Assembly (NCBI GenBank): GCA_973895155.1
Contig: OZ316898.1
Location: forward strand, 16,661,420-16,725,419
Origin: Marsupella aquatica
Taxonomy: Eukaryota > Plantae > Marchantiophyta
DNA: 64,000 nucleotides
Reading direction: 5' to 3'
A program made the position numbers and the translations under genes. Of this stretch, positions 14,401 to 45,500 are shown piece by piece (the first letter of the stretch is position 1; each line of letters starts with the position of its first letter). The notes beneath the pieces were generated by a model that had not been told where the DNA came from, searched no databases, and saw nothing but the letters and a program-made list of their open reading frames with translations.

Positions 14401-17100
14401 CCATTCCAAAATTATATTGTATACTGTTTAGAACAAGCCCAACTATTCATACTCCATCCCTAGGTTTTATTGTATACAGTTTAAAACAACCCCCGTCACT
14501 GATGCAACGTGCTAGTACAAATTATCAAAATGAGCTGGTCTTATATTTATGGATGAATGCATAAAACCCAAGTGTAGTTAATATTTTTTTCAATGAACAT
14601 CAAAATGATTTTCAAGGCAGAAGCACCCCAATTGATGCATGTCCAGATGCATTCCTCTCTAGTGCGTTCTCTTCTATGGTCGAAGCAAAGCGAAATGTGG
14701 ACCTCGTTCTCCATTCGTTGCTCAATCATACACCACCTCATGAACTTTTCCCAATGCATGAAGGGAGCTCTTTCCAAAGTACAGTGCTTATTCAGATCGG
14801 TCTTAGAAAGCTGCTCTGGCAAGGCTCGAGTCTTGAGGAGTCTTTGTAAGACGGCTGGTTCATCATGATGGACGGTGGAGGGTGCTTTCCTGAAAGGGGG
14901 AATTTCATTTATTGATCTTAGCCCAGCTAATGCAGTGCGAGGAAGACTCCCATGAATCCCGCTCACGGCTCACCCAAGTGAAAGAAGAGATGCTAGGAAT
15001 ATTTTCTATTAAATTCTTGAATCTTCGTCACCCTTAGATTTCCCTAGATTTAGGGCGAGCCATCAGATTATGGCTAATAGACCCTATGGCTCGGTGGGAG
15101 ACTGGCCAGGGAAACCCAAGGTCTCTGGTCAATTGTACGCAAGGTTACCGAAGTCGTACCTTTTGCCACTAGGAAAGCAATGCTTACAGTCTCCGGCTGC
15201 TGCTGACTGCTGAGGCTGTACAGTGTTTTAATTGCCCTCTCCCTCTGAAGGAATGGACTGCACGGAGTGTCCTGTAAAGCAGCTTGACTTGGGGGGCCAG
15301 ATTCCGATGGAGGGAGCACGGAGCTTGCCTATTGCCTAGCCTCTGTCCTGAAGTTCACCGCATGCAGGTGGTGACAGATTTTCCTTCCTGCAGATTCCAA
15401 GGCGGGGTCTTCGTGGTGTCAGATTTTCCTCCTAGCAGATTCCGGGCAAATAAGAAACTCGCAGTTCAGGCTTCCGGTTTCAATTCTGTGAGAGTTGTTG
15501 TCATCCATCGACTTCACCCGACGGTACAGGTGCTTGCAGATGCACCACTTCGTTGCATCAGACCTCTTCTGCTTCGAGAATCGAGCTCAGAGGTGGACAT
15601 GTGTAGATGGTGATGGTTCGGCCTTTGGGTTGTGGTTCTGGCGAAGTGTTTCACATTACAGTAGTTCGAAGATAATAGTTGGGCGGACCTTGGATGTTCA
15701 CTCTTCAGGCTTTGCAGCAAGACACTGGCATAGTGTTTCTACAGAGAGGCATTCAAGGAGGCGGTTGGTAGCGACGATAGACTACAGACCGCCATGGAGA
15801 CAGGCAGGAAGCAGCCCAACCCGAGCTCACGAGTCCTTTTTGGGGGCTGGAGATGAAAAGTGACTTACTGATGTATTAATAATTGGAGGTTGATTCCACT
15901 CCTTAGTATTGCAGAACAAAGGTCGAGGCTAATCGATCGTTCATTTGCGTGGTGTGGGATGTTTCCTAAATGTTCGTGAAATCCATCGTCAATTGGGCCG
16001 CTTGGTTTGCTCGTCTGCATTCTCGAATTTAATGTAATGAGCCGTAGTGGTAGTGCCCTGACCTTCCTTCCTCCCCCGCCTTGCCTTTCTCAGCTCACGA
16101 GAATCTGCTCAACAGAACGCTTGTTGCATCAATCTTCACCAAATTGATCTTTTATCCGTGCTCCACTTTCTCTTTTCTTCGAAGTTGTTCTTCTACGAGA
16201 ACGATGCATGGTACAATAAACTTTGCTCTTCTTCGAGGCAATTCTTCATTTGAGTTGGCCTGGTGATGTAGCCAACTCTTGGCCGAAAGACTGGAGCAAG
16301 GAAGAAAGCATTCAACCGGGGGACTGCTGACTGGGTCGGTGTGCTGTCAAAACTCTGATTCATATCTACTTTAGACTAAGGCTTCCTTCCAGATTTTGTT
16401 CTATGAATGGCATTTTGGTGATTGATCCCTTGAAGTGACCCCTTGCAGCCTTGTCAGCTCCCCGTTCCTTGCAGTTGTGTCAGTTGAAAAATCAGCTTGA
16501 CCTCCTGGAGCGGTCCAGTCTTTCAATTGGAAGATATCACTGAGTGGCAGAGGAGGCTGGGCAGTGTGCACATTGGTGTCCGATTTTCTCCTTCGAGATT
16601 CGACTGAGCACGGACGATATGCGGTGTCAACAATGTCACTCTCGGGCAGAAACTTCTGGTGATGCTAAGATTGATGCGCACATGCGGAGTGGTGGTGAAG
16701 TCTGCTTGTTCGCCCCAGAGTCTGGCCCACAACGGCACGTGGATGAATGTCTCAACTGAGGAGAGCAACGAAGGAAGACCCAATTTTTGCAATGCGTAAA
16801 GCAAGACCAGTCTTGTCTCGGTGGTACAGCAGCGCACAGTATGCTCGGTGAAGTCCATCCCGCTTGAGCGGTGAAAAAAAGTCCTTTCTGATGGTGACCA
16901 CATTCTGACCATCCTTTGACTTCTCTAATCATTCCTATCGGCCAAAATTTTTGGCATCACTTTCGTGGATTTTGTGTACTGTTGGAGATTAGCAAAAGCC
17001 AGGGTGGAAAGAAGAAGGGTGAGGTTTGGGCGAGATTCCTGGGAAGTGTTTAATATTGAAGCTCAGAGAAGTGACAGGGATTGTTGAAAGGGGTCCGTGG

Positions 17101-19852
17101 ATGCGCACTGCAGAGGAGGAAGATGAGGCCGGACACTTTAGGCCTGATGCATGGAAAGTGGCATGGGAAGCAGCGCAGGATGTGCCAGCGCCATCCTGCG
17201 AGGTTAAGGCAGCAGCAGAGAGGCTTGTCACGGCAGAGAATCTCCAACAGGCCCTGGGATGGTTGATACTCTCCCAAATCGGTATCCTCCTTGGCTCATT
17301 CGGCCAGCTTATGTCCGTGGCCGTATGCTTGCTACTCTTTGCCATCTTCATGGTGGAAGCCTCGCTGAAATATCTTCGGACCTGGGTACACAGGCGCTTT
17401 TTCATGGATGTGCCTTGTGCCTTTGTGCCCATTCACGAGGAGAGAGCCTATGATTCGCTCGAGGTCTTCGGAAGGTACCTCCTTTCTGCTGTTCTGCTGG
17501 AACTCCTCCTCTACGTTCCTTTCATATATGTGGTTGTGGACTTCTCCAGGGATTATTACATCAACACCGATCATTGTAATTCAGATCCCAATTATCCCTG
17601 CCCTCAGCTCGGGACTAATCTGTTAGTTTACCTACTCTTCATCTGTACTTTCACAACGATTGGGCATTGGCTGACGAGCCTGTTGACCGTCCTGGCGTTC
17701 TATTTTGCCATGGGGAGCGGCATAGTGCCTCCGTTTCGGGATGGGAAAATGAAAACGCGGAATTTTAACAACGAAGAAGGGACCAGCTTGAAATGGATGA
17801 GCCCGTGTAATTGCAGCGGCAGCCGTTGCAAAGTGAGCAAGCGGCGTCTCTCCATCCCCAGAACTCACTTTGACCGGGTGCTCTGCCTCACTTGGTGGGT
17901 TCATATGGCGAGGCATCGTCATCTCTCCGCAATGGTGGCCAGCGCCCAACCCGGCAGCTGTGGATTGTCCGGGCATTGGTTTGAGAGTGTGTCCGAGCTG
18001 AGGCGAATTGTGGAGAAATGTCTCTTAACTGGAGCTGGAGACCATATCTTGAACTCTAACGGGCCTCTATGGGTATCTCAAGAAATGGCCCTTAGGGCGT
18101 TGGTTATCGTTTCTAAGCAACCGAGAGGAAGTATCTGGTGTAAGGACATTCTCCAGAAGAATGGATTTGATCTTTTGGTGCAGGTTGTGAGGGAAGGGAA
18201 GGGGTCAACAAGCAGAGGGTTGGCTGCCGCTGCCATTGCAGTTTTGGCCACTCAGGACAAGGACATTCTAAGAGAACAGGGTGCTGACCTTTCCTTGGCT
18301 GTAACTCCCTTGAGGAGACTGCTCAGATATAAGGAGCATGAATTGAAAGAGGTTGCGCTCGGAGCCTTGCTGAATACTGCTTTGACTGACGATGACAAGC
18401 AATTCAAGAATCTCCTTTTACAATTCCATAGCTCGGATGGAGTTGTGGGGGGTTCTCGTGGCACTTTCATGTCCACTCTCATGGACATTGCCCAAAATGG
18501 TCCGACGACTACTTGTCAGGAGCTTGCTATAGGTTTGCTGACTCGCTTGGCTGCTGACAGCCCACAGGCTCGGACGGCTCTGATGGGCCCCAAAAGCTCT
18601 GACGAAAGTAAAAAACACAGGGGAATTGAATTTCTGATTGAGCTTCTGCAAGATGGGCAGACCACCGAGATAAAGGCAAGTGTAGCAGGGGCGTTGTCGG
18701 AATTAGCTTTTAAGGAAGGGAAAACTATTGGAAAGGGGCCTTTCGGCGAGAGCTGCATCAAAACTTTGATTGAACAGTTAGGAGGTGAACCTCAGATTGC
18801 TTATGCATCAGCAAGGGCTCTGTGCAATCTGGCCATAAAATGCGGCGAGAATAAGCAGACAGTTGTTTCAGCTGGAGGTATTGAAAGCTTCATAAAGCTC
18901 TTAAGCACTGCAAACGAGACTTTGCCAGAGAGAAATTTTCACACTCAGGTGGGTCCTTTCTCTTTGCTCCCCCTCCTTTTGCGGTCCTCAACTACAGTTT
19001 TGCAAAATGCTCCAAATATTCGTAGTTAAGAAATCTGAATACCTTGTGGACCTGTTGATGCAGAGAAAAAGACCAAGTAGCAATTCTCAATTTGTGGTAC
19101 GTCTTTTATGCTCGCAGTCCTTGGAGCTATTGTTTGAACAACACGTCAAAGCCCCTTCCACAAGAGCACAAACGGAAGGAGTAAAAGCCATTTTTTTTCT
19201 AATTAGGACAGACCACCTCATGAGCATGAGCATGAGCATGAGCATGAGACTTCATTTGGATTTCTCTCAACATTGAATTGTTGTGTCGTATCTTTGAATG
19301 TCTACAAAGTGTGTTCGCTTTAAGTGGAACCAATGGATGTTGGCTGTTCTTGCACCCCAGATGCACGAGCAAGTGCAAGCAGAGGCAGCGAGGGCCTTGT
19401 GGATACTCGCTAATAACAACAAAGTACGTCAGGAGCGAATTTCTGAGGCCAATGGCATTCCTCTTCTTGCGGAACTCTTGGTCAACGACAGACCAAGAGT
19501 ACACATACAGGCAGTTGCAGCTCTCTCAGCCCTTGCCTGGAAGAACAAGAATATTCAAGACTTGATACGTCAAGACGACACAATATTTCCTAGAATGGTT
19601 CAACTGCTTGAAGTTATGCAAGGTGTCAGAGTGGCAGACAAGGTCACGGACAAAATGGAAGGAAAGGTATTGGAGAAAGTTGCAACAGCAATTTTGAGTT
19701 TTACTGATGAAAACAAACCTAACCGAGAGTTCCTTCGAGATGTTGCATTGCGTCCACTTCAGAATATCTACGAGGATGCAGGCTACAGTGATAAAGCCTT
19801 GAGGAAGGTCAGAGAGGCCATAGAAAGTCTGACAGGAAACAATCCTGCATAA
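17101..19852 (+). CDS. Predicted multi-pass membrane protein with C-terminal armadillo (ARM) repeats. Exons 17101-18948 and 19361-19852, ~779 aa; start ATG inferred
   Basis: Long ORF 17026-19029 with 3-4 hydrophobic segments, then ARM-like units (VAGALSELA, SARALCNLA, GGIESFIKLL). A phase-0 intron CAG|GT...CCCCAG|ATG joins it to an exon with AARALWILA, GIPLLAELL, AVAALSALA. Confidence 0.8.
19219..19248. repeat. (CATGAG)5 microsatellite in the ARM-gene intron
   Basis: Read directly. Confidence 0.95.
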
Positions 19853-30100: not shown

Positions 30101-32581
30101 ACTGTGTAGTGGAAGGCGGGTGAGAATACTCTAATGGGTGCTTTTGTGGTCGTGTGTTTCGACAATTCTTTGGCTAAATGTGATACTCCTACCCTGCCCT
30201 GCAGGAACACCGGTACGTTTGCCCCACCCGTGTCCGCGCTAAAAAGTATATGTACGGGAGACACTTCCTCCCTCTCTCTCTCGACCGCCATAAGCGGGTT
30301 TCGAACCTTCGACGCGGCCTTCCTCCACCCCCTTCCTTCGACGAACAGTATTATACCTTACCTTCCATTATAAAAGGCCCGGTATAGCAGTCATTCAATG
30401 CAGCGCACAGGAAATACGCGATTGGCGTTATCATGCCTGCCCCTTCGTAAATGCTGGACGCGAGCTGACGGATCCGTCCGTCGGCGGCCGTCAAATGCCA
30501 GCCTTGCCAGCCGCGCAGCAGGCAGGCAGGCAGCCTGGGGCCTGGGGGCACCAGTACCTCTCCTGCTGGACCTGCCAGTACGCAAACAAATAATCCGGCC
30601 GGACGCCGGAAAGAGGCTGAAACGGCTGTTGCGTGACGGCCGGGCCGGGCCGTCGTTGAAATTCTTTCGCTCCCCGTTGAATTCGTTCGCTCTCTACAGT
30701 GTACAGTTGCACCAGAACATGAGCTCGACTGGACTGGGGGGCATTCAAATGCGTTCCGAATCCCGGCCAGGTATCGGGAATGTACGGTGGGCAAGTTGCA
30801 TTGCGCTCTGCGTGCGGGGAAATGCCGGCAACCTGTCACAATCGCTGGCCCGCAGTTTAAGGAGGACACTGAGGCAAGGCCGCAAGGCTGGCTGCGTCGG
30901 GTGGCGTCGCCTCCTGCGAGCGAGGGGGGGGGGGACCCGGAGGACTGTACAGTACATGATGGCCCCGAATTACTGCAAGCCCGGCCCGGGCTAAGTTTCC
31001 CGGCCAATGTCGGAAAGTATTACTCAGCACGCCACATAATTGTCGGGGGAACGCCAGGCGTTTTGCGGCTTGCGGCGCCATTCCGGTACCGTGGAAGGAC
31101 GGACGGCTGGCTGTCTGTTCGCTTGTCGGTCCTGGGGCATACAGCCAATGCCTCCTAATTATATTATATAATAACGAGAGTATGCGCATACCGTCGATCC
31201 TTGCTCGGCGACTGCCACATTGTGGAAGCTCGCGAGTAAAATGTTTACCTGCAGTGTTATTTATATTCACGGTTGGGGGTAACTGGGAAAATGCGGGAAT
31301 GGGACCGACCGGACCTTGACCCACCACCGACCGACGGGGAAAGTTTACACTTCTTGCTGGTGCGGCATAGTCTTCATTGTACTCACTACAGTAGTACTCT
31401 CACTTACTCAGTTTCTACCTCGCATTGTACGCCGAGTGAATTTCCGGCTGTCGGCTGGCAACTGAGGACGCATTGTACGGTAATCGGGGGCTGGGAGTGA
31501 GGTCTTTATGTTTTTGGGTTTTCAGAATTACAGGTTTGCAGGGAGGGCCATCGTTCACCCGGATTAGGGTGCACTCTCACCCGAGGTTACGACTTGTTGC
31601 CCAAGGTAGACCCCGGACCTCAACCACGACTAAAAGTGTTTGTGCAGGTTTATTTTAATTAAGTTAGTGAAGGTTAACTTCCCAAGTACAGTAGTTCAGA
31701 ACCCGGCTCTTCAAATTTGGATGCCAGAAAGTTTATGAAACTGAACTTATGAAACTTTGTAACGTAGTAATGCTTAGAGCAAATTTCTGGTTTATCACGG
31801 CAATTCCTAATGCAGAAAACAAGGACAAAGAAAGGTCATCCTCTCTGAGTTCATTTGAGAGTTCAAGATCATAGGAAGATATATACAAAATTAAAGAGAT
31901 CAGCTAATGTGGGGACACATCAAGCTGTAACTAAATTACTCACGACCACCACAGTAGACAGAAGGACTGACAAGTCTAAGAGAATCTCATCAAGGAATAC
32001 ATGTCTGGCTATAGGTGGAACTACTGTATATCATTACAATTAATGATGCGATAAATTCTACAGTCAGCACTGTCTGTAGATTTAGGCTCGTCACATTCTT
32101 TGAACAGGTGTGAGACCTCTAGTGCAGTTGTTGTTGTGACTTGTTTCTCTATATGCTGGAAACAGAGGCAAGCAAACCTCGAGGGCGTCACTTTCATGCT
32201 GGGTGATCATCATCTGCAAAAACGAATGTTGTCAATACATTTTGAGGAACACTTATTAGAATATGAAAGTAAGGTTTCAAAAATCGAAAAGTGATACACA
32301 TCATCACTTGATTGGTTTAGAGCTACTTGTTTTTAAGTTGATAAAGGTATCATAACTGCACCTGATGCGGGTGCCTCCAATAGAGGGATGATGCAAAGAG
32401 GTCTTGGTGGGGAACCAAGTCTGATCAACCACTATACATACTTGACATTGTCCAAGTCAAACTACGTTTACCGAGTGCAATTGACTACCTTGTCAAACTG
32501 ATATGGTGCTCTAAGGATGCATATTCATCAGAAAATTATTGTCTGCAACAGAATTAAGCCATTGCCCAGCATTCAGGATAG

Positions 32582-32941
32582 TGTCATGCCGAGGGACAGT
32601 GCCGCTTGTGCACATCGGCATGTCCCTCGCATGCCCGCTAGGTATGGTTAGGGCTAGTGTACTACTTGAGTTAGTGTCATGTTCTTGTAGCGAGTTTGGG
32701 CTGTTCTTGAAGCAAAAGGGGTTTGTTAGTGTGACGCCTGGACCCGGTCCTACTTAGGGCATGTTTTTCTTTGTCGTTCTTCAGTTCTTCTTGAATCGCT
32801 ATTGACAGAGCTTAGACAGTGTGTTCGTCGGTTCCGTACACGGGATTCACACAGTGATTCGTTAGATGCTCCCGGCCGATCTTGGCATCCCGCCGGTTTT
32901 CGATTCGATTTCAGTACGCTTGTTTCTCTTACGCCTTTTAT
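32582..32941 (+). repeat. Repeat A1 (360 bp, left terminus)
   Basis: Matches 42022-42381 with 4 substitutions seen. Confidence 0.95.
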
Positions 32942-32953
32942 TCAAGAAGAACT
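32942..32953 (+). promoter_or_regulatory. Putative self-priming PBS (TCAAGAAGAACT)
   Basis: No TGG-type tRNA PBS after A1; 32940-32953 is the exact reverse complement of 32783-32796 (AGTTCTTCTTGAAT) inside A. Confidence 0.75.
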
Positions 32954-33420
32954 CTGTTGCCGGGTTAGCGATGAAGGGAAGAAGATCGGAGACGCTGTGC
33001 TTCTCAATTACTCGAGACAGTTGACGCTTTTCCGCTGATGCCGGTGCAATTTCTATGGAAAAACGCTGAGCGATGGGGTGGAAGTTATGATTTTAAGTGT
33101 ATACACTTAAGTATACACTTAAGTCAAACAAGCCCCCCTCCCTCGTTTTCCTTCACGTTTTTTTTGCCCAGGCTTTTCTTTTTCGGCCACAACCTGTTTC
33201 GCGACTTGCTGTTATCGATTGCCGCATCTACGCCGACTGCACAGGGCGCACCTGTGCTCGCGTTTTTAACAACTCCCTAGTACGACTGCCTCGGCCACCG
33301 CGCGCCCCTTTTCTTTCGCCCTTTTTCGCATTGCCAAACCTCGAAGTTCCTCCCTCCGTTTGTTTTCCTGCCTTTATCTCGCAGGCTGTGCGTACAGGGC
33401 ATTGTGTCTCCCACTGCCAG

Positions 33421-33895
33421 CATTTAATTAAGGAGAGGAGGGGGAGCAAGTACAAGCCGGGAGTCAAGAGGAGAAGGCACGGAGGCCTATGAAGCATTAA
33501 AGAGGAGGGAGGGGGGAGCCGAGTACCAGCCACGGAGGGGAGGGGGAAGCGCAAGGAGGGCACGAAGCCCTATGAGGAATTAAAAGAGGGGGAGAGAGGG
33601 AGTACATACGACTCCCTTCTCAGGAGTCCTGCAGGGCACGAAGCCCACTTAGCAGCATTCAAGAGGAGAGGGGGAGTTGAAGCGAAAGCAGGGCACGAGG
33701 CCCTAGGCAGCTCTGAAGCATTCAAGAGGAGGGGGGGCAGTACATTCGAACTCCCTCACACGGGAGTCTTTTGCCAGGGCACGAGGCCCAAATTGCATTG
33801 AAGGAGAGGAGGGGGGGAGTTCGTAGCCCCTTTTCGGGAGCACATAAGGTGGGGCACGAAGCCCTATGGAGGGCTCATGCCATTAAGAGGGCCCG
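33421..33895 (+). repeat. Degenerate purine-rich array in the element leader, ~7 units of 55-75 bp
   Basis: GGGCACGARGCCC (five copies) followed by ATTNAAGAGG and G/A tracts. Confidence 0.75.
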
Positions 33896-36800
33896 GTTTC
33901 TTTGCCCCCTCGCGACGTCTTTTCTCCTCTTTCCGGCCACCTGCGAGCTTGCCTCGGCTATTTTCCCCTTTTTCGGCCTTTCTCACTTTTTCGCGTGTGA
34001 CGATCGACCTGTTGCCAGTTCCTGGGTCCACATCGGGCCGATGTGTATACACTTAAGGGGGCCCCTTTCACGTGTTGCAGTGCCCATTTTTTTTCCGTTC
34101 GCTCCTACTTTGCTCTCAACTACTTGCATAGGGCACCGTGCCGGTGGGTCCTTCCTTTTTTGGGTCCACATAGGGGCCCGATGTATACACTTTAAAGGGG
34201 CCCAATGTATACACATAAGGGAGTGACCCTTTGTGCCGTTTTTTGTTGTTTTTATTCGTTTTTATTTTGACCCTTTTTAGGCAAGGCCGGTATACACATT
34301 GGGGCCAATTTCATCCTGTTTAGCCCCGGCCTCCTTGCCTCACGCCGTTGCTTCATTTGTGGGTTAATTTTCTAGCCTTGGGCCTGCCATTTATTTTTCT
34401 TGTCAGTTTCTTTCCCATCGGCCCCCCGGGTGAGCATGCAGCATGTCAGCAGAGGAGCCGAGTCGTAGCAGCTCATCACCACCGACACCCCGGTACCACT
34501 TACGGAGTGATCCACGACCGTTGGTGCCAATTTCATTGGAGTCTCGGCAATTTTGACGACGTCAGCAGACAGCAGCAGCACCCACACCACGCAACCCTTC
34601 TGCTACATTTGGCGGTCGCTTCACCTCTACCCCAAAGCCTGCTATCACTTCTTTGCCTTTTTCTCCTTCTGCATTAGTGATTGTTCCAACTTCACCGACA
34701 TATAGCATGGATTCCAGTCACTCATCTGGCCGCATTGAGCGCTTCAGCGGGCGGCCGGGCATTGTCTCTTTGCGTGAGTTCAAATCCACTTTCTACACTG
34801 TCGTTTACGAATTGGAGTTGAAGTATGGCAGCAATTTCACAAATGCTTTTGCATTTAAGCAGCTAGCCAGGTATGTGCACCACGAGGCTTTGGATGTGTA
34901 TGAGCAGCATTCTCAACGGCTGCTTGCTGTCACACAATTGCCTAACCCTGCCTATGCCACTGCAATTGCGGCTGCCTCACAACTGGCATTATAGAATGCC
35001 ATTGCAGCCCATGCTGCTGCTCCTGCCACTTCCCCTCCTACTCCCATTCCCACCCAGTTACTCCCACTGTCTTGGCATAGGCTACATCAGGCATTTCTCC
35101 CACCATTGATTCCCCTGTCTTTGCTGATCCAGTGGCTGAGTTTTTCCAGGTTCTTGAATTGGGATTCCCAATCAAGAGTGCTGACAAAATCATGCAGTTG
35201 GCCACCTTTGTGAGGCAGCGCGATGAAACATTGAAGATGCTATATCGCCGGCTTCTCAAGCTGAAGGAAGACACCCAGAGCATCATTGACCTTGAAGCTG
35301 CTCATCGCTATCTTCACGCATTGGAGGGCACACCAGCTCTCCATTCGCAAGTGTTGCAGCAAGTATTCTCAGAGTTTGGAGACAGCTACACCCTGCTCAA
35401 TGTCTATGACACTGCTGAGAAACTTGAGTTGGCCCATGCACATTATGAGGCCAGTATTGCACGTCCACCGCGATCCAGGTACCAGGCTGCTGCCCCTACA
35501 CTGGCCACTCCTTCCCGTGTGCCACAGTATGGTTCCAAGACCAAGCCAGCACATGCTGCTTTCATGCTGCCATCTTGCAACTACTGTGGTAACCCTAATC
35601 ACAAGGCTAATGAATGTGATATTGTTGCTGAGGACCTATCTTGTGATTTTTGTGGGAAAGTGGGCCACTTGGAGGCAGTTTGTTTTGCCAAATTCCTCGA
35701 GAGGAAGCAGCTACGACAGCAGGCCACTCATCCTACTCCTACTTCCACTCCCCCACCAGCTAGGAAGGCTCCTACTACATCAGTTGCTCCTCCTTCCAGT
35801 GGCAAAGCATCCAGTGCTAACAAATTGCCCAAGCAGCAAGAGAAGCAACCAGCTCAGAAGGAGGCTCACAACGCACAGGCAACTCAACTCCAGTCTTTGA
35901 CTCATGAGGTTGAGTCCCTACGTGCCCAACTTGCCAACATCAAAGGCAAGTCCACTGCCTCTGCTGGTCCTTCTCAACCGGCTGGCCACGTGCAACCCAT
36001 CCCTGGCCCAGGCACCACTGACAGTTCAACACCTCTACCCCGCTCTTTCTATGGCTTGCCATTTGATGCTCATATGGGTGAGTGTGTGCTGTCCTCTGCT
36101 ACACAGCCTGGCCTTACAGCAGAATTTTCAGATTCATTCTGCCCTTCCTATTTTGCTTACCAGCAGGCCAGTGCTGCCTCCCATATTGCTCCCACACGCC
36201 ACATTGTACAGGCTGATGGTCTTGCTGCTGGTCCTATGACTAGAGCCAGGGGAGCTCGGGCTGTCATGCCCCAATATTTTCAGCCACTCACACTTGCTAA
36301 AGAGCGCACCTTGTTGGCGAGGGGGGAGGGAGCTGCAGCTACATCCATTCCACCACCAGGTGCTGCTGACATTTCACAGGGAGCTGTTTTTCCTGAGCTG
36401 CTTGAGCATTTCACCTCCGGTATGGCACAAAGGATTCTTACCACTCCACTTTTCAGTTGCCATGATTTACAGCTGGATGCTAGAGCTGTCATCAGAGCGC
36501 TCGAGGGTTCACTGCATTCTTCATCAGCCCCTGTGACACCGGTTTTGGAGGTCCAATCTCATGTACATACTGGACCTTCTTCTTCTCCATCACATGTTTC
36601 CACTGGTTTGGCTGCCCCAGTACCGATTGCTGCTGATTGTGTGACCAGAGCTACACTTGATTCTGGTCATGCTGCTCCATCTTTCCTGGCTATGCTGTTG
36701 AGTGGGAAGACCGTGGACACTAACTCCCTTCACAAGGTACCTCATCATTTGCCAAAAGTGGTGCCTAGTGACAGGACTTTAGTTTCCACCACCATTGCCA

Positions 36801-37519
36801 TTGTTGACAACAGGAATTCAGCAGTCAAGTTGGAGGGTCACACTCCTTAGGTGGTCATGCTAGACACAGGCGCTCAACCAGTAATCTTGGGCATTCAGTT
36901 TGCCAAGAAGATGGGACTGCTGACTGATCATTTACAGCAATCCAAGTGGCACATTCGAACTGCTAGTGGCACTGTGGAGGATGTGCTGGGTGAGAGTTCT
37001 ACTTTACTCACTCTCACTTTTAATGGAGGTACAGATCAGGAACTGCATTTCCCAGTCAGATGTTTGGTTACCAATGCCACTACGTATGATGTGCTCATTG
37101 GCCAGGAGGCTTTGTTCCCACCAGGTTTTACTATTGACAACTGGCATGAGCATGCATACTACAGAGTTGATTGGCATACGGATGGCTCACACTTGGGATA
37201 CATTCCACTTGATTTGCATGGTACCCATACCCCTATGGCTCACCACTGTGTGTTGAAAGCAGTGCATACAACTACCTATGTCAACCACCCATTGCAGGAT
37301 TGGATTGAGGAGGATGATGATGAGGTGGCTGCTGCACATGCTGCTACACGTATAGCAGCACTTTCCAGCAACGTGGATCATCAACCAGAGGTGGTACAAT
37401 GGCTCCAAGCAGCCCATGGACCTTTAGTGGCTGCATTGCGCAAATTTGAGGACCTTGGGCAGCACAATGGACAGCCAATAGCCCCAATCTTGAGCGCACC
37501 AGTTACATGGACTCCTGCT

Positions 37520-38470
37520 CCAGATGGCCTTACATTGCTTGAGCTTTTTGGTGGTATTTCTACAGGCCTGGAAGCTCTCCTACAGTCTGGCATGGTGGTG
37601 AAGCAGTACATCTATGTGGATATTGATCCAGGTGCAAGGCAAGTGGCTGAATCCCGTCTGCTGGAATTTTCAGAGCGATTTCCCCAGCAGTTTCCACATA
37701 GTGCATGGAAGTCTGCATTTTCTTTCTTCCCTCCAAATATCCAGCTTGTCCAGCACCGGCACTTAACCCTTCTTGGCTCCCTTGATTTGATCATAGTTGG
37801 TTGGGAATGCCAAGGGTTTTCAGCTGCTGGTCACGGTGCTGGACTGCATGATTCTCGTTCTGGCCTTTTCACAACATTGGTTCAGATTCTCACCTGGGCT
37901 CAATCCCTTTATCCTGCTGTTGGTTATATCATTGAGAATACTCCATCTCAGTTTGACCAGCGTCCACAGGTCAAAGAGGATTTCAGTGTGGTCCAGCACT
38001 ACTTGGGACCACCCCTTCTCATTCATGCAGTGCACTGTGGTTCTTATGCACATCGTCTTTGTAACTTTTGGACTAACCTTGCACCACCTTCCTTGCTGGA
38101 GATGGCTCTTCACCACACATCCAGGGACACTAACCTTACAGTGGACCAGATTTTGGATCCTGACAGTTCTTGCCAACCAGTTACACGGCAAGAGCCAGCA
38201 CCTTGGTATCCAGCCAATACCATTGGACAACCCCGTGCTGCTTGGCCTACATTTGTGTCCTTTCCAGGTGCACATGCTTTTCAGGGTGATGGTCCTGGTC
38301 TGGTTTATCAACATTCTACCGGTATATGGGATGAACCTAGTCCTGAGGAGAGAGAACGGGCTATGGGCTTCCAACCCGGTACTACAGGTCACACCAAAAT
38401 CACCAGGCTGGCCAGGAATGCTTTACTTGGCAGGGTAATGGATCTCAATGCTCTCACTTGGCTTCTGGTC
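37520..38470 (+). other. DNMT3-like C5 cytosine methyltransferase domain within pol
   Basis: Motif I LLELFGGISTG; II YVDID; IV DLIIVGWECQGFS (Cys codon 37808-37810); V GLHDSRSGLF; VI YIIENT; VIII AHRLCNFWTNL; IX PEERERAMGF; X TRLARNALLGR. Order is unpermuted. Confidence 0.9.
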
Positions 38471-40549
38471 ACTTGCATCCTTTTTCAGATGTCCATTCCT
38501 CCAGCATTAGGAGCTCCAGCCCTACCACTCCATGGTGCTGCTCCATGGCATCCAGACCAGGTGCACTTACCTCTATTCAACACTCACCGCTTCAGTCCAA
38601 GTGTTGGGGGGGAGGAGGTCCCTTGTAACGTGGCTGATATCATTTCTGAGTTTCATGGTGTGGATCAGACCAGAGCAACAGATACAACAGGCCTTGGAGA
38701 GGCCTCATCACCTTATCAGCAGCATGCTAGCAGCTTGGATAGTGGAGAGGTTGGCACTTCTGGCTCTTCAAGTACGAGTACATCAGGTCCTATTCCTAGT
38801 GTTGCCAACTACACATTTATCATGGGCAACCACCTGAGTAAAAGATAGAAGGACCAGCTGCTGAATTTGCTCCTCAAGCATGAGAATGTGTTTGCTTTCT
38901 CTATGAAGGACTTGGGTAAGTGCAAGACTATGCAGTTCTCCACTGAGTTGGCTGATGAAACACCTATCTTCAGGCGGAGACACCGTTTGAGTAAGCATGA
39001 GTGGCAACTGGTGGATGAGAGGTGCCAAGAGCTTTATGAAGCTGGTCTTATTCAGCCATCTACATCAAATTTTGCGGCAGCTACAGTGATGCCAGCAAAG
39101 AAGGATTCCAGTGGATTGTGGACAGAGAAGCGCATGTGTGGGGACTACAGGCCACTGAACCTGGTCACACCCTAGGACAGGTACCCCATGCCACGGCCAG
39201 AGGAGCTATTTGACAGCATTGGAGACTCAGACATCTTCACTCTTGTGGATCTAAGGCAAGGCTTCAACCAGATTTTGCTGCTTGCAAAGGACCGCAAGAA
39301 AACAGCTTTCCATGGTAGTAACCAACTATGGGAGTGGTTGGTGATGCCATTTGGCTTGAAGAATGCGCCCATATTCTTTCAAAGAGTCATGGACCAGGTT
39401 CTTCAAGGTGCTGAGTTTCTGAAATGCTACATTGATGATGTGTTGGTCCACAATAAAGGATTTGACCAGTATCTACTTGACCTTGAGGAGCTATTCATGA
39501 GGCTTAAGAAGGTGAACCTAAAGATACACCCCAAGAAGTGTGAATTTGCTGTCAGATCAGTAGTATATCTTGGGCATCGCATTCTTCCAAATGGAACCAT
39601 GGCTCACTGGGCCAAGGTGGTATCCATCTTGGAAATGCCCACTCCTACCGATGTTCACACTTTGAGGAGTTTTATTGGGTTGTGCAATTACTACCGGATC
39701 TACATCAAAGATTTCAGTACCATTGCACACCCATTGTATGCTTTGTTGAAAAAGAATGTGACTTGGACATGGAGTACAGATGCTGAGGCAGCATTTGCCA
39801 CTTTGAAGGAGAAGCTCTCAGAATACCCGGTGCTGAGAAGACCTGATTTCAGCAAGGTCTTTGTGCTACACACAGATTGGAGTGCCCTTGGGATTGGTGC
39901 CATTCTGGGCCAGCATGATGAGGAAGGTAAAGAGTACGTCATTGCCTATGCATCCAGGAGCAACAATCAGGCCGAGAGTCATTATTCTTCTTATGAGGGT
40001 GAATGCCTTGCTGTTGTGTGGACTGTCATACATTACAGGCCCTACCTCTATGGGACCAGGTTTGTTCTCTACACCGACCACCAGCCCTTGAAGTGGTTGA
40101 TGACCAACGACAAGCTTACTGGCAAGCTTGCTCGGTGGGCGCTCATACTCCAGGAGTATGATTTTGAGGTAATTCATAGGCCTGGTGTGACACATCAAAA
40201 TGCTGACACTATGTCCCGCAGCCCTTTGATTGCCTCTGATGATCCCTCAGATGCACGGCAGGATTTTGACCAGGTTTCCATCCTGCCTACATTTCATGCA
40301 TCTACCTATCTTGCTTTGCTGCCATGCTACATTGTTGACCAACCTGTGGTGGACATATGGGAGGACAGCGACACTCTGAGATTTTTGCAGCATGGGGAGT
40401 ACCCCACCCATGTTACTGCTGCCCAGAGAGACCGAATTCAGTAAAGGTCCAAGCGCTACTTGTGGAAGGGAGATCATCTTGTGCGTTGCTTGCCAGACAG
40501 GGAAGTGGTGGTTCCACCCATTCATGAGAGGGTTGGCCTTATCCGTAAG

Positions 40550-41600
40550 GTACATTCTGAGCTTGGTCATTTTGGTGTTAAGAGGACTTATAGCCTCTTG
40601 GTCCCCCATTATCATTGGAGAGGCATGCATGGCCAGGTTCGAGATGTTATTGCCCGGTGTGAACAGTGTGATAGGGTAAGGACTTCTTTCACATCTCGGC
40701 AACCCACACTTCATCCACTCCCTATTCAGGGCATGTTTTATCGTTGGTCATGTGATTTGGCTGGAGAATTACCCCTCACATCTCGGGGTAATCTCTACAT
40801 CATGATCATGATAGAGCAATTCTCCAAGTGGATAGAACTTGTGGCATTGCCGGATAAGACCTCCCATAGCACTAGCCAAGCATTACTGCAACAAGTTCTC
40901 AGCCGCTTTGGAGCTTGTGCAGAATGTCTCACTGACCAGGGATCAGAGTTCAGAGGGGAGTTCCAGGAGCTGCTTGATCAGGCTCTCATTGATCATCGCC
41001 GGACATCACGAGATCACCCACAGGCAGATGGCTTGGCAGAGCGCATGGTTCAGACATGCAAGAAGGGCCTTCGGAAGATCTGCCTCACCAAAAACAAGGA
41101 GGATTGGGACCTGGCCTTACCCTACATTGCCATGGGGTATAGGATGTCCAGACATGCATCACTGTCTAACTTTTCTCCCTACTTCTTGTTGTTTGGTCGT
41201 CACCCAGTTCCACCTTCTGCTATTGCTTCTCACATGCTTCAGGTGGTGGACTTGGATTCAGCTGTGACTTGGTCTGATGTGATCTCTGAGAGGGCTACCC
41301 TATTCAGGAGGGTTATGCCCATGGCCATGGAGAATTTGGCCATTGCACAACACAGGGACACACTGCGTTATGCACACACACGAGGGGGCACTTTTCAGCC
41401 CAAGGTCAGGAAGTTTGAAGTGGGAGATTTTGTGTACTTGCAGCGGCAAGCTAACGACACCCTGGACACCTCTACCAGTCGCACTATTCTCAGGGTCAAA
41501 GCTATTCGACCGTCTGGAGTGCTAGAGTTACAAGGGGCAGATGGGCGCACAATTGCTGACAATGCCAAGAATTGCGCCCCTTGTCATCTGCCTAACCTGG
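40550..41600 (+). other. DDE (rve) integrase domain
   Basis: HSELGH...CEQC; WSCDLAG; LTDQGSEF; ADGLAERMVQ; FEVGDFVYL. Confidence 0.95.
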
Positions 41601-41647
41601 ATCCCACCATTGTGACTTCTACTTGGATTCCCCCTGTGGACTACCCT

Positions 41648-41782
41648 TGCAAAGTGTGTTTGCGAATTGATGATGCTGACCAGATGCTGCTGTGTGACAA
41701 TTGCAATGGAGGGTACCATCTTTTCTGCCTTCGGCCTGAACTTACCCAGGTGCCAGAAGGGTTATGGTTTTGCCCTTCCTGT
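41648..41782 (+). other. C4HC3 PHD finger at the integrase C-terminus
   Basis: CKVC-x11-CDNC-x4-H-x2-C...WFCPSC. Confidence 0.95.
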
Positions 41783-41832
41783 GCTCCACGTGCTATCTAA
41801 CTTTTCTTCAGCCCTCCTTTTGGCTGTGGTCT

Positions 41833-41839
41833 GGGGGGG
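41833..41839 (+). promoter_or_regulatory. Short polypurine tract (G7) abutting repeat B1
   Basis: CTGGGGGGG|ATACAGAGG, about 30 bp after the pol stop codon. Confidence 0.65.
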
Positions 41840-42019
41840 ATACAGAGGTTTACACCTCCACTACGTACATACCACCTCAGTTTCCTTTTTTCTTGGCACT
41901 TGTGAATGTGATTGGACTTTTTCTATGCATGTTGGTTGCTAGCAACTTGCACATATGCATTGCTGGTGACTTGTATGTTTTCGATACACTATATGGCTAC
42001 GATACTATATGTCACGACA
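41840..42019 (+). repeat. Repeat B1 (180 bp)
   Basis: Matches 42382-42561 with 2 substitutions seen. Confidence 0.95.
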
Positions 42020-42021
42020 GC

Positions 42022-42381
42022 TGTCATGCCGAGGGACAGTGCCGCTTGTGCACATCGGCATGTCCCTCGCATGCCCGCTAGGTATGGTTAGGGCTAGTGT
42101 ACTACTTGAGTTAGTGTCATGTTCTTGTAGCGAGTCTGGGCTGTTCTTGAAGCAAAAGGGGTTTGTTAGTGTGACGCCTGGACCCGGTCCTACTTAGGGC
42201 ATGTTTTTCTTTGTCGTTCTTCAGTTCTTCTTGAATCGCTGTTGACAGAGCTCAGACAGTGTGTTCGTCGGTTCCGTACACGGGATTCACACAGTGATTC
42301 GTTAGATGCTCCCGGCCGATCTTGGCATCCCGCCGGTTTTCGATTCGATTTCAGTACGCTTGTTTCTCTTATGCCTTTTAT
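42022..42381 (+). repeat. Repeat A2 (360 bp)
   Basis: Copy of 32582-32941, separated from B1 by the dinucleotide GC. Confidence 0.95.
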
Positions 42382-42561
42382 ATACAGAGGTTTACACCTC
42401 CACTACGTACATACCACCTCAGTTGCCTTTTTTCTTGGCACTTGTGAATGTGATTGGACTTTTTCTATGCATGTTGGTTGCTAGCAGCTTGCACATATGC
42501 ATTGCTGGTGACTTGTATGTTTTCGATACACTATATGGCTACGATACTATATGTCACGACA
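42382..42561 (+). repeat. Repeat B2 (180 bp, right terminus)
   Basis: Copy of 41840-42019, fused to A2 without a spacer and followed by the TSD ATAG. Confidence 0.95.
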
Positions 42562-45500
42562 ATAGGTAGCTAGCACATCAGGCTCGAACTTCACTACATG
42601 GTCATGTTGGGATTTCCCCTTTGATGGCTTTGAACAAACATCTCGATGAATCAGAAGTGATATGACTTCCTTCAACTGTACCTATAATATTTCTCTTCCA
42701 GGAATTAGCAAGCATGACTGGAAAGGGATAAACTGCTATCCAACTCAGGTAAATGCCAAGTTGCATTCCCAAAGATAACACCTGCTTGAGATTGATATTG
42801 GAAAAGATAGTGCAACTCTAATAAATAAAATAGAAACACCTTGCTTTATATGTGGACAAGACAGAAACCAGCCCCTCCTCTTCATGCTGGACTAAAGATA
42901 AACATAAACTAAAACAAAGGTACAACAAGTTTGAGAATAGGGAGGAAAAAGTGTCCCTGTTGCAATTAAATAAGTAAGAAGAGAGTTGCGCACAACTCTC
43001 CTACCAAACTGGAAAAAAAAAGATTTGAGAACATGTCCGAGTCAAACTTTGGATGCTAAAGCAACATTTCAAGAAAAAATTAAGTTGAGGAAAGAATGAA
43101 GTAATCGAAAATGTATAATCGCTACCGTCTGGCTTTTTGAAACATTCAAGGAGCGAAGACATCTACTAATACAATTTAGATCAGTTTGGCACTGAATAAG
43201 TGGCAATCAATAACGGGAGGTGATACTTGACCTTAATGGTGTGATTCTCAGTGGAAACAGAGAGTTGACACAGTAGATAATATACGCTCGGAGGTGAGCT
43301 CAATGGTCGTTGTTACTTGGGAAGGCTCAAGCTCAACGTGGCCAATCATTCCAAAGGCATGGTTTATGAGCTAGTGAAATAGTAAGCTTGATACTGTAGT
43401 TGTTTTTCTAACGTTGAGTGCAGCAGTAAGCAAGTCATTTAACGAGAAAGTTAAGTGATCAACAGGTGTTTGTGGGTGACTCTGCGTAATTACAGTCAGT
43501 CTCATTCCGCGATTGAAATTCAACGTGTGGTGCGATTTGCACGCCTAGATGCACATTTACGAGTGTCTGACCGTGGTTGGCTTCGGCTGGGCCCCTGTAG
43601 GTCCCCCGTTGGAGGGCGGAGTTAAGTTGGCACGTTCACACGAGCGAAGGGATGTACCTTCCTCCCCTCGTTCGTACTGTAACGCTTACGTTACACCTCC
43701 CACGCGCCACGAGATGTACAAAAGAGCACCCCAGATGACAGGCAGGCGCGAGGGCGGGCCATAGGTATACCCAGGAGGTCAAGAACGAGTCCCTCGGCTG
43801 TACATCGATCTGTCTCTGTTGATGACAGGGCAGGTTTTCATTGTCTGCAAACTTACGGCTCAGGCATGGAATATTCTCTCGCAAGCACTTCGCCTCGCTT
43901 GCGCCTTGCGGGTTGCCGCACACCTAGACAGATGTGAAACCTTTGGGCGACTACTATTTTGCCACTAGCTGGTATGTACGGGAGATCTAGCTCCGAGTGT
44001 AAGGCTGTAAGGTACCGAGATTAAGGACCAGTCCTTCTCGCCTTCCGGGGACGTACTGGCCGAAACTGTACATGAGTAGGCTCCTCTAGTCTTCTCGTAG
44101 GAACGCTGGGTGGTCCGCTGGTCGCTATAGAGTCCAGGGCTCCAGGTTAGACCGTCTGGGAGGGACTTCTGACGTGGGACGACCCGAACGAGCTGGCTTC
44201 ATATTGCGGTACAGTACTTCACCTTCCTGCCGCTAACCACAGCAGCAAAATAATGAAACTCAAGCTGGACGTGTTAGCCAATCCTAGGACGCCAGGTCTG
44301 CCTGACTCGGGTGCAGAAGAGACCGCAGTTGGTGAGACAACTCGCCGCCTTGCCAAACCCGGAACGAGCTAAACCCGGACTGCAGGTGAGATGGTCTTGT
44401 GCAACGAGATGCCCCGTCGATAGCATGAGCTCCACCTCGCCGGGAACCGCCAAGGAGGGGGTGCTGCTTCACCGGAGGGACGAGCTGATGCCGCCCTAGT
44501 GCTGGCAAAGCTGGTGCAGTAGTATAAGGGCTGAGTTGTCTTCTGTACCTGCCTTTTTTCTTCTGATTTCGCAGTTTTCTTCTGTGCGTAGACCGCTTGG
44601 CGTGTGTAGTGTGTGTGCCCGAGGAGGAACGAGGAGCGGATGTGCTTTCCGAGTTTGTGCGTGTGGTGCACCTCCGAGAAAAGAGCTTTGGTGACTCGTT
44701 GTGACGAGAAGAAGAGAGGTGAATTTGACCAGCAGAGTTGTGGTGGAGTTGTGACTTTCGGCGTTGTCCATGAGCTTTTAAAACTTTTCTAGGCTTTTTG
44801 AGTGATAGTTTTCTTTGTCGTTTCGTTCAATATCTTCTTCTTCTTCGGGCTCATCCGGCGGGCGGGTAGCGGGCTGGTGGAAGGTCTTTTTCCCTCTGTA
44901 TTTTAGTGTGGTTTTACGGGCGTGGAAACGAACGAGGGAGGCTGGCAGTACTGCGAGCAGGCTTTCGGAATATCTTTCTCCGTGTTTGATGTGCGTGGTT
45001 TGTGGCTCAGGCGTGGTGGCTGGTCTGGTTTGTTGAGCAGGGTTGTGCGTCGAGGGTGTGGAGTGGGCGATTGGTGAGAGGAAGCGCGCCGTGCAATTTG
45101 GAGAAGCCGATCGGAGTTGCTGTGGTAGACAAGCAGGGTTTCTTGTCCCAGAGTTCATGCGGGGATGAAATCGGGTGTAAGGTGTCGTGGAGGCTTTGTT
45201 GAGTCAGGGCCTTAATTGCTCCAGTTTTGGAGGGATGAAAATTCTGTGGACTAATATGTTGGACAGCAGCTGTGGAGTGAGTTGGAATCTTCAAGCGTGG
45301 CAGCGCAGCTCCTCGTCGAGTTACGGGGGAAGATACTTGTAAATAGTCTCAATCGTGACTGACTGGGCCGATCCTACCAGCTTTCCGACGGCCCTCGTTA
45401 TGTCTTTCACATTGCTTGGAGGCAAATCTTACCTTTCGGATGGTGGTTTGATGCCCACGTTGAGATGTACGAGAAGACGAAGTGAGTCCTCCTTACTTCT

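Follow-up and report, generated by a model that had tools for sequence, protein, structure and literature searches.

A green-lineage Ty3/gypsy element whose provirus is very probably a circular permutation of its reverse-transcription product

In the provirus of the retrotransposon in the 64-kb stretch of liverwort DNA analysed here (the window), the reverse-transcription product is very probably present in circularly permuted form, opened by a DDE integrase at an att site inside the LTR. As read from the assembled contig, the window copy runs ATAG, A1, primer-binding site (PBS), internal part, a run of seven G residues (G7), B1, GC, A2, B2, ATAG (Table 1). Its left end consists of A alone, and it is not flanked by two identical LTRs. 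The window contains no third copy of either repeat and no second copy of the internal part. The coordinates that an earlier note had assigned to A, B, the palindrome and the target-site duplication (TSD) were confirmed to the base.

The boundaries of the repeats are the key to this reading. A ends at the PBS and B starts at the G-run, so the LTR expected from reverse transcription is B-NN-A, or B-GC-A in the window copy, in agreement with the earlier note; TCAAGAAGAACT lies directly 3' of A1, and A is predicted to carry the R-U5 of this LTR. Within B-NN-A, the integrase-type ends TGTCA... and ...ACA stand head to head as CA-NN-TG. In the window this site reads CACGACA-GC-TGTCATG (42013-42028) and contains the perfect 10-bp palindrome GACAGCTGTC, and the inserted copy starts and ends at these same TG and CA termini, flanked by the 4-bp TSD. 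The A2/B2 joint, TTTTAT/ATACAG, unites the end of A that precedes the PBS with the start of B that follows the G-run, with no bases lost or added, as expected of a seamless join of the two predicted cDNA ends.

Table 1. Features of the window copy, in window positions
Feature	Position	Strand	Remarks
Left TSD, ATAG	32578..32581	+	recurs at 42562-42565
Repeat A1, 360 bp, TGTCATG...TTTTAT	32582..32941	+	356/360 identity to A2
Site AGTTCTTCTTGAAT inside A	32783..32796	+	PBS complement; predicted genomic RNA 5' end and self-primer
PBS ATTCAAGAAGAACT	32940..32953	+	overlaps A1 end by 2 nt; probable Tf1-like self-priming
Gag-like ORF, CCHC zinc knuckle	35132..36850	+	zf-CCHC E 0.004, below Pfam cut-off
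Aspartic protease and putative Dnmt3-like C5 DNA methyltransferase	36851..38848	+	closed by in-frame TAG 38846
Reverse transcriptase and RNase H	39188..40444	+	RVT_1 3e-25, RT_RNaseH 2e-38
Integrase: H2C2, DDE core, C-terminal PHD finger	40460..41800	+	Integrase_H2C2 5e-14, rve 1e-13, PHD 6e-12
G7 run	41833..41839	+	predicted plus-strand primer (PPT); adjoins B1
Repeat B1, 180 bp, ATACAG...CACGACA	41840..42019	+	178/180 identity to B2
Palindrome GACA-GC-TGTC	42016..42025	.	proposed internal att site; integrase ends head to head
GC spacer, 2 nt	42020-42021		between B1 and A2
Repeat A2, 360 bp	42022..42381	+	pair of A1
Repeat B2, 180 bp	42382..42561	+	seamless with A2; CACGACA is the right edge of the element
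Right TSD, ATAG	42562..42565	+	copy of 32578-32581

The same layout was found in other genomes. Six full copies were compared, the window copy and five others, from four genome assemblies and one metagenome contig representing at least five taxa. The five were from Calypogeia fissa (TSD CACC), two separate Marchantia loci of one family (L003, TSD ACCG; L002, TSD AAAG), the chlorophyte Scenedesmus (TSD CGGC) and a bryophyte metagenome contig (TSD GGTC). All six had the repeat order A-internal-B-NN-A-B, TG...CA ends with a perfect 4-bp TSD, CA-NN-TG between B1 and A2, a G-run adjoining B1, and an A/B joint that was seamless to within 1 nt. B was the shorter arm in every case, and each inserted copy retained one intact B-NN-A, while the alternative layout, A-B-NN-A-internal-B, occurred in none of the six. 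A perfect 4-bp TSD is expected by chance in 1/256 per copy, and the repetition of the junction logic together with a perfect TSD in five other copies excludes chance. The earlier note had proposed testing whether independent insertions share the repeat order and 4-bp TSDs, as all five further copies did, and had held that relatives with two ordinary LTRs would refute its reading; the full copies were permuted instead. Within each copy the repeat pairs were near-identical, whereas between species repeat similarity was undetectable except at the termini, which indicates that each pair is remade from one template in every cycle. In contigs of the family from public runs, A is preceded at its first base by varied sequences, and the A/B joint is spanned in some of them.

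The placement of the PBS against A1 was upheld, with the small overlap listed in Table 1, and the PBS appears to be a self-priming site rather than a tRNA site: it complements the element's own site inside A. In the window copy this complement is exact over 14 nt. Exact complements of 12-14 nt were present in the window, Calypogeia, Scenedesmus and both Marchantia copies, the metagenome copy lying outside this comparison, and they covaried, each taxon having its own sequence; the chance of such a complement is about 4e-4 per copy. Given this pairing, the minus strand is probably started by self-priming of the Tf1 kind, and the probable start of transcription lies inside A. The pairing forms the closing helix in both the MFE and the centroid fold of the window copy, and the whole R-U5-PBS stretch folds no better than shuffles (z = -0.99). 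Tf1 of Schizosaccharomyces pombe is self-priming and has ordinary LTRs. The window element resembles it in that its PBS complements its own RNA near the predicted 5' end, not a tRNA, and differs from it in being permuted.

The coding content is that of a Ty3/gypsy element. The pol order is PR-RT-RH-IN, with the DNMT sitting between PR and RT. The protease was recognised by a profile match (gag-asp_proteas, E 2e-5) and the methyltransferase by DNA_methylase PF00145 (23.7 bits; cut-off 22); homologues of the ORF that carries both were found in Calypogeia, Sphagnum, Marchantia and Closterium. Among solved structures, the best match to RT-RH (E 8e-56; 7q5b, 4ol8) and to IN (E 4e-21) was Ty3 in both cases, and alignment with the Ty3 integrase (7q5b) showed the two aspartates and the glutamate of the DDE triad in place. 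No match to a tyrosine recombinase (Phage_integrase or other) was obtained among 17 ORFs of at least 80 aa on both strands. Profile searches and the Ty3 alignment agree with the earlier assignment of the integrase to the DDE type. The Gag-like ORF stops at an in-frame TAG at 36848, a position through which the relative P0001 reads, and the RT-RH segment is preceded by an in-frame TAG at 39173 and closes at a TAA at 40442. The window copy is defective, as four in-frame stops show, and is a fairly recent insertion, as its repeat pairs are 98.9% alike. Relatives were found in liverworts, Sphagnum, Closterium, Haematococcus and Scenedesmus. The element is a member of an old Ty3/gypsy clade of the green lineage, characterised by PR, a Dnmt3-like DNMT, RT-RH and a DDE integrase that ends in a PHD finger. 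It shares with Ty3 (Metaviridae) the PR-RT-RH-IN order, TG...CA ends and a short TSD. In contrast to ordinary Ty3/gypsy elements, in which linear cDNA is inserted and the provirus is LTR-internal-LTR, its integrase ends lie within the LTR and its provirus is permuted.

The earlier note had regarded this architecture as unrecorded in gypsy elements, but de Mendoza et al. 2018 (PMC5890265) recorded it in KnitGypsy-Dnmt3 of Klebsormidium nitens, which is described as having DIRS-type repeats and Gypsy domains (Fig. 4c legend) and is drawn in the order A-coding-B-A-B. The element is of this published kind, matched by description and domains: both have Gypsy domains, a Dnmt3-like methyltransferase within a Gypsy-type pol and a DIRS-like repeat order, and they differ, as far as the published description allows comparison, in host, a charophyte there and a liverwort here. 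The permuted layout is therefore already on record for Klebsormidium (2018); PBS and PPT positions, TG/CA ends, TSDs, the palindrome and the mechanism are not addressed in that paper.

The account of the origin of this layout that we favour, with some confidence, is that the termini of the linear cDNA are joined, that integrase opens the palindrome of the 5' LTR, and that the new ends are inserted in concert. Reverse transcription would yield linear cDNA of the form B-NN-A...B-NN-A, the two termini of which would be joined, in the simplest form by host end-joining that closes a 2-LTR circle. On each strand of the 5'-LTR palindrome, an integrase tetramer would then cut 3' of CA. The two resulting CA-3'OH ends, recessed in the ordinary way with a 2-nt 5' overhang each, would undergo concerted insertion at a 4-bp stagger. 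All statements on this intermediate derive from integrated copies.

Part of this route has a counterpart in retroviruses, as the integrases of PFV and HIV-1 act on 2-LTR circles, cutting the palindrome at the LTR-LTR junction to give 3'-processed ends (PMC1180852, PMC1905944). The reaction proposed here would likewise join a retroviral-type integrase to a head-to-head CA...TG palindrome and 3'-processed ends. In PFV and HIV-1, however, the ligation joint is itself the palindrome, and the reaction is no more than a side route, whereas here every LTR has its own palindrome, the A/B ligation joint stays uncut and the pathway appears to be obligatory. Head-to-head ends with a short spacer as the proposed substrate of a DDE enzyme also recall the circle junctions of IS3, IS30 and IS256, in which abutted ends with a 2-3-bp spacer are the enzyme's substrate; these bacterial DNA elements do not use reverse transcription, and it is the transposase that forms their junction.

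Whether a closed 2-LTR circle is the actual substrate of the integrase appears evenly balanced on the present sequences. Such a circle would carry two identical palindromes, and the alternative layout should then arise equally often; its absence from all six copies has a probability of 0.5^6 = 0.016 under this expectation and would require that integrase be steered to the 5' LTR or that the events follow another order. Similarly, sealing by host end-joining predicts occasional small indels at the A/B joint, whereas all six joints were exact to within 1 nt. The interpretation in the earlier note is partly supported: the permutation is borne out, but the second layout expected of a symmetric circle is missing.

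The same permutation might arise with no closed circle, a route that we consider rather unlikely. In one variant, the 5'-LTR palindrome of linear cDNA is cut and the new ends are inserted, and the host seals the blunt A-end and B-start as it would a chromosome break; in another, the A/B joint is made by an end-to-end template switch of reverse transcriptase. Either would account for the exclusive use of the 5'-LTR palindrome, since B is the shorter arm and this palindrome is therefore always nearer to a cDNA end; it is also present on plus-strand strong-stop DNA, and the exactness of the joints fits as well. However, an insertion that leaves a chromosome break would be costly, the 3'-LTR palindrome could equally be cut first unless proximity to an end matters, and no precedent among LTR elements is known.

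An improbable alternative is a route like that of DIRS and Ngaro elements, in which RNA extends from inside A1 into B2, the A2/B2 joint is inherited through the RNA, the B-NN-A joint is the bridging template that closes the cDNA, and a DDE integrase has replaced a tyrosine recombinase. Ngaro/PAT-type DIRS elements have split direct repeats in the order A1-internal-B1-A2-B2 (PMC8969392), the order seen here and in the Klebsormidium drawing (PMC5890265), and the circle of this route would be the same molecule as the 2-LTR circle. In algae and bryophytes, however, the repeat boundaries fit the covarying self-priming PBS and the G-run exactly, a fit that is predicted by synthesis defined by the PBS and PPT and is unneeded by a bridging template, and which therefore counts against this route. 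Moreover, no primer site for copying B2 is present downstream of B2, RT-RH and IN are Ty3-like, and TSDs are present, whereas DIRS elements lack them.

It is very improbable that the layout stems from an ordinary element with LTR A+B through a single rearrangement, a nested insertion or an assembly error. It recurs in all six full copies, two of them at Marchantia loci whose TSDs differ; in the window, the PBS adjoins A1, the G-run adjoins B1 and matching TSDs flank the whole unit. The mismatches between A1 and A2 (four) and between B1 and B2 (two) mark them as separately diverged copies, not an exact assembler duplication. Finally, a tyrosine-recombinase retroelement (DIRS, Ngaro or PAT) mistaken for gypsy, which would share the split direct repeat order and nothing else, is refuted by the lack of a recombinase match in any ORF of at least 80 aa and by the Ty3-aligned DDE integrase, as Ngaro/PAT-type elements have a tyrosine recombinase and no protease, DDE integrase or TSD, whereas the window element has PR, an H2C2-DDE integrase with rve, TG...CA ends and 4-bp TSDs.

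Returning to the joining of cDNA termini and opening of the LTR palindrome, we see about equal grounds for and against the broader proposal that end-joined (circular) cDNA is the obligatory integration substrate of a whole clade of LTR elements with DDE integrase, ranging from chlorophyte algae to liverworts, and is opened at a circle-junction-like palindrome that the LTR contains. The 'circle-junction att site' is an abandoned model of retroviral integration. If the proposal is true, obligatory circular integration would be a natural case of that model, and these elements may be a structural bridge between LTR elements and the split-repeat elements of the DIRS/Ngaro type.

The window element reads ATAG, A1, TCAAGAAGAACT and the internal region, a G-run (G7, the predicted plus-strand primer, PPT), B1, the dinucleotide GC, A2, B2 and ATAG again. 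The positions that the earlier note had assigned to the A pair (32582 and 42022), the B pair (41840 and 42382), the palindrome and the ATAG on both sides proved correct to the coordinate. Because A starts with TGTCATG and B ends with CACGACA, B1-GC-A2 forms CACGACA-GC-TGTCATG (42013-42028), within which GACAGCTGTC (42016-42025) is an exact palindrome. The A2/B2 joint, TTTTAT/ATACAG, unites the end of A that precedes the primer-binding site (PBS) with the start of B that follows the G-run, and no base has been gained or lost there. A1 and A2 differ by four substitutions and B1 and B2 by two (1.1% each), which speaks for two real, equally old copies rather than a duplication made by the assembler. 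The 64-kb window holds no other copy of either repeat or of the internal region.

A single reading frame (35132-41800) encodes a CCHC gag, an aspartic protease, a C5 DNA methyltransferase (DNMT; a PF00145 match barely over the cut-off), reverse transcriptase (RT), RNase H and an integrase that combines an rve core with an H2C2 domain and ends in a PHD finger. Ty3 was the closest solved relative of both RT-RNase H (E 8e-56) and integrase (E 4e-21), and all three DDE residues (two aspartates, one glutamate) are in register with those of Ty3 integrase. A tyrosine recombinase element was ruled out, as none of the 17 ORFs of at least 80 aa on both strands matched such a recombinase. The stretch of ~2.2 kb that separates the PBS from the CCHC gag ORF (32942-35131) gave no Pfam match; at 33459-33814 it holds a 21-nt G-rich unit (AGCATTCAAGAGGAGGGGGGG-like) in five copies. 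The frame is interrupted by four stops (TAG 36848, TAG 38846, TAG 39173 and TAA 40442). Intact proteins of relatives, P0001, P0003 and P0070, carry sense codons at all four positions (e.g., E and Q in P0003), and programmed read-through was rejected as an explanation; in this copy the stops look like mutations, and the window copy is therefore dead. The stops of two Marchantia copies (L002 and L003) fall at alignment positions different from these four.

Relatives were sought with the protease-DNMT and integrase-PHD pieces of the window element, and five further full elements were readable (Table). All six full copies have the order A-internal-B-NN-A-B, NN being a 2-nt spacer, with a TGTCA start, a CA end (listed as (G/T)CA; CACGACA in the window), a G-run immediately 5' of B1, an A/B joint that is exact save for at most one ambiguous base and a perfect 4-bp target-site duplication (TSD). 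The earlier note had asked whether independent insertions share A-internal-B-A-B and a 4-bp TSD, as the five further copies do, and had named relatives with ordinary LTRs as evidence against its reading; all six copies are permuted. A one-off rearrangement is ruled out by the recurrence of this layout in five further elements. Past their termini, the repeats have no detectable similarity between species, and within each copy the pairs are near-identical, so both pairs must be remade from one template in every round. The two Marchantia elements are near-identical and occupy separate loci; the metagenomic copy is old and adjoins a PPR-DYW gene.

Repeats of the window element, and repeat sizes, TSDs, spacers and PBS words of the full copies
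Feature or copy	Source	Window position	Size (A/B for copies)	Identity	TSD	Spacer	PBS word	Word length	Position in A
Repeat A1	window	32582-32941	360 bp	356/360 to A2
Repeat A2	window	42022-42381	360 bp	356/360 to A1
Repeat B1	window	41840-42019	180 bp	178/180 to B2
Repeat B2	window	42382-42561	180 bp	178/180 to B1
PBS word	window	32783-32796 (complement within A)					ATTCAAGAAGAACT	14 nt	202
L001	Calypogeia fissa		446/163 bp		CACC	GC	ACTGAAGAAAGACT	14 nt	295
L003	Marchantia polymorpha		293/119 bp		ACCG	AC	ACTCGAAGAACTA	13 nt	112
L002	Marchantia polymorpha		292/119 bp		AAAG	GC	ACTCGAAGAACT	12 nt	112
L007	Scenedesmus sp. PABB004 (chlorophyte)		about 553/196 bp		CGGC	GC	GTTCTGGGGGGG	12 nt	338
L013	bryophyte-like metagenome contig		292/about 180 bp		GGTC	AC

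Other loci were left out of this count: a 9.3-kb contig without repeats that ends at the element's edges (L005), a single locus broken off inside the element (L008-L011), over-decayed copies from Sphagnum (L012) and a metagenome (L014), a Closterium locus that is one-quarter N (L004) and a Haematococcus locus of tangled tandem or nested elements whose gene model is chimeric (L006). In Haematococcus lacustris (L006:10001-30850), gene model P0195 joins retinoblastoma-like host domains to two integrase-PHD copies, and the locus contains near-exact duplications of 2.9 kb and 1.4 kb; P0195 is probably an annotation chimera across tandem or nested elements. Exact direct duplications with a spacing of exactly 1000 bp occur in Marchantia assembly GCA_003032435.1 (L002:2547-3846 and 15974-17273), one of them within the element just 5' of B1, and these look like scaffolding artefacts. 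The DNMT lies between protease and RT in the window (36851-38848) and L013, and between RNase H and integrase in Scenedesmus (L007:10001-19986) and in metagenome polyprotein P0070 (L005:1368-8867). Its differing place within one integrase-PHD clade points to acquisition on two occasions or to relocation of the domain.

The PBS that follows A1 is the exact complement of a stretch within A in the window element, L001, L002, L003 and L007, for which the chance expectation is ~4e-4 per copy, and the PBS and its partner covary across taxa. In the window, the MFE and centroid folds are both closed by this helix; overall, the fold was not better than shuffles. A tRNA-type PBS was ruled out, since the site is without TGG and its self-complementarity accounts for it. 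The arrangement is that of Tf1, which is self-priming, its PBS pairing with the element's own RNA. Comparison across species supports a predicted transcript start inside A and a U5 that would end where A ends.

Because minus-strand synthesis would be primed at the end of A and plus-strand synthesis at the G-run, the cDNA product is predicted to be B-NN-A ... B-NN-A. Judged from its sequence, the inserted copy is a circular permutation of this putative product. Its termini would be joined as A/B, and the joined DNA would be opened at CA-NN-TG of the 5' LTR. There, integrase would cut each strand of the palindrome 3' of CA, leaving two ordinary processed ends that each carry a recessed CA-3'OH and a 2-nt 5' overhang. 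Staggered, DDE-type insertion is evident from the TSDs. To our knowledge, all characterised LTR retrotransposons and retroviruses integrate linear cDNA via its termini, and 2-LTR circles are viewed as dead ends or, at most, as a reserve. In the window clade, end-joining of the cDNA looks obligatory, because the termini of reverse transcription are not the ends used by integrase. A precedent for internal cleavage of a palindromic LTR-LTR junction exists in the PFV and HIV-1 integrases (PMC1180852, PMC1905944). Thus, as a formal statement, the copies give good support for a permuted provirus opened at an internal att site by a DDE integrase. Permutation and internal att site, both proposed in the earlier note, were upheld; its 2-LTR circle is an intermediate that we infer, and its view of the architecture as unrecorded was too strong (PMC5890265).

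A closed 2-LTR circle would hold two identical palindromes. Opening of the 3'-LTR palindrome would give A-B-NN-A-internal-B, and one end taken from each palindrome would give A-internal-B or a solo A-B unit. The alternative full-length form was absent from all six copies (0.5^6 = 0.016), and A-coding-B-A-B is also the order drawn for Klebsormidium (PMC5890265). Either the enzyme is therefore directed to the 5' LTR, or events follow another order. B is shorter than A in every copy, so in the predicted linear cDNA the 5'-LTR palindrome always lies closer to the left end, which may help to explain why it alone is opened; its position on plus-strand strong-stop DNA is a second clue. In a DIRS-like route, the A/B joint would be passed on through RNA and would yield an identical circle. 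This route leaves unexplained the exact fit of the repeat boundaries to a functional PBS and to the G-run in algae as well as in liverworts.

We also compared Logan contigs of public sequencing runs with window 41300-43000. Word depth, very high across the element, was nil to low across the flank, a contrast expected of a family with many copies. At 41300-42560, summed depth reached tens of thousands in runs X1, X3 and X4, and the unique flank had ~40-90 in X3. These genomes therefore carry the family at very high abundance. Varied sequences adjoin the first base of A, representing other insertions, and a contig (X1 record 8) bridges A/B. Flank 42581-42982 was matched exactly in organism B (X3, X4), and X1 yielded no flank contigs. 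Among the pieces listed for 41300-43000, none crosses the whole of B-GC-A-B or B2/flank, so the contigs neither confirm nor contradict the locus arrangement. Short contigs are also blind to the observed layout versus the alternative permutation, because all local junctions are common to both.

KnitGypsy-Dnmt3, described in Klebsormidium by de Mendoza et al. 2018 (PMC5890265), was reported with a DIRS repeat structure and typical Gypsy domains (Fig. 4c legend), and the window element resembles it in both respects. The window element is a liverwort member of a published, mechanistically unexplored Ty3/gypsy variant. We found no literature tying this layout to PBS/PPT, TG/CA ends, TSDs or an integration route, and 'split direct repeats' with gypsy and integrase led to DIRS work only. 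New here are the presence of the layout in a chlorophyte, the self-priming site with its covariation and the absence of the alternative permutation, which still calls for an explanation. Gypsy-7a_cRei is a PHD-carrying Gypsy of 15.4 kb, for which 86 new insertions are recorded in a laboratory strain of Chlamydomonas; its published drawing shows 'LTR subparts', and the last 8 bp of the right LTR are missing from the left (PMC9940879, Fig. 6A legend). It would be a ready bench model if the permuted layout is present there. Encoding both a DNA methyltransferase and a histone reader (PHD), the elements described here are of interest for epigenetic self-regulation. If true, the proposed route would widen the repertoire of retroviral-type integrases, imply a dependency on host end-joining testable in Marchantia or algae, mean that LTR-finding software mis-annotates permuted elements because of their layout, and offer a concrete comparison for the split direct repeats of tyrosine-recombinase retroelements.
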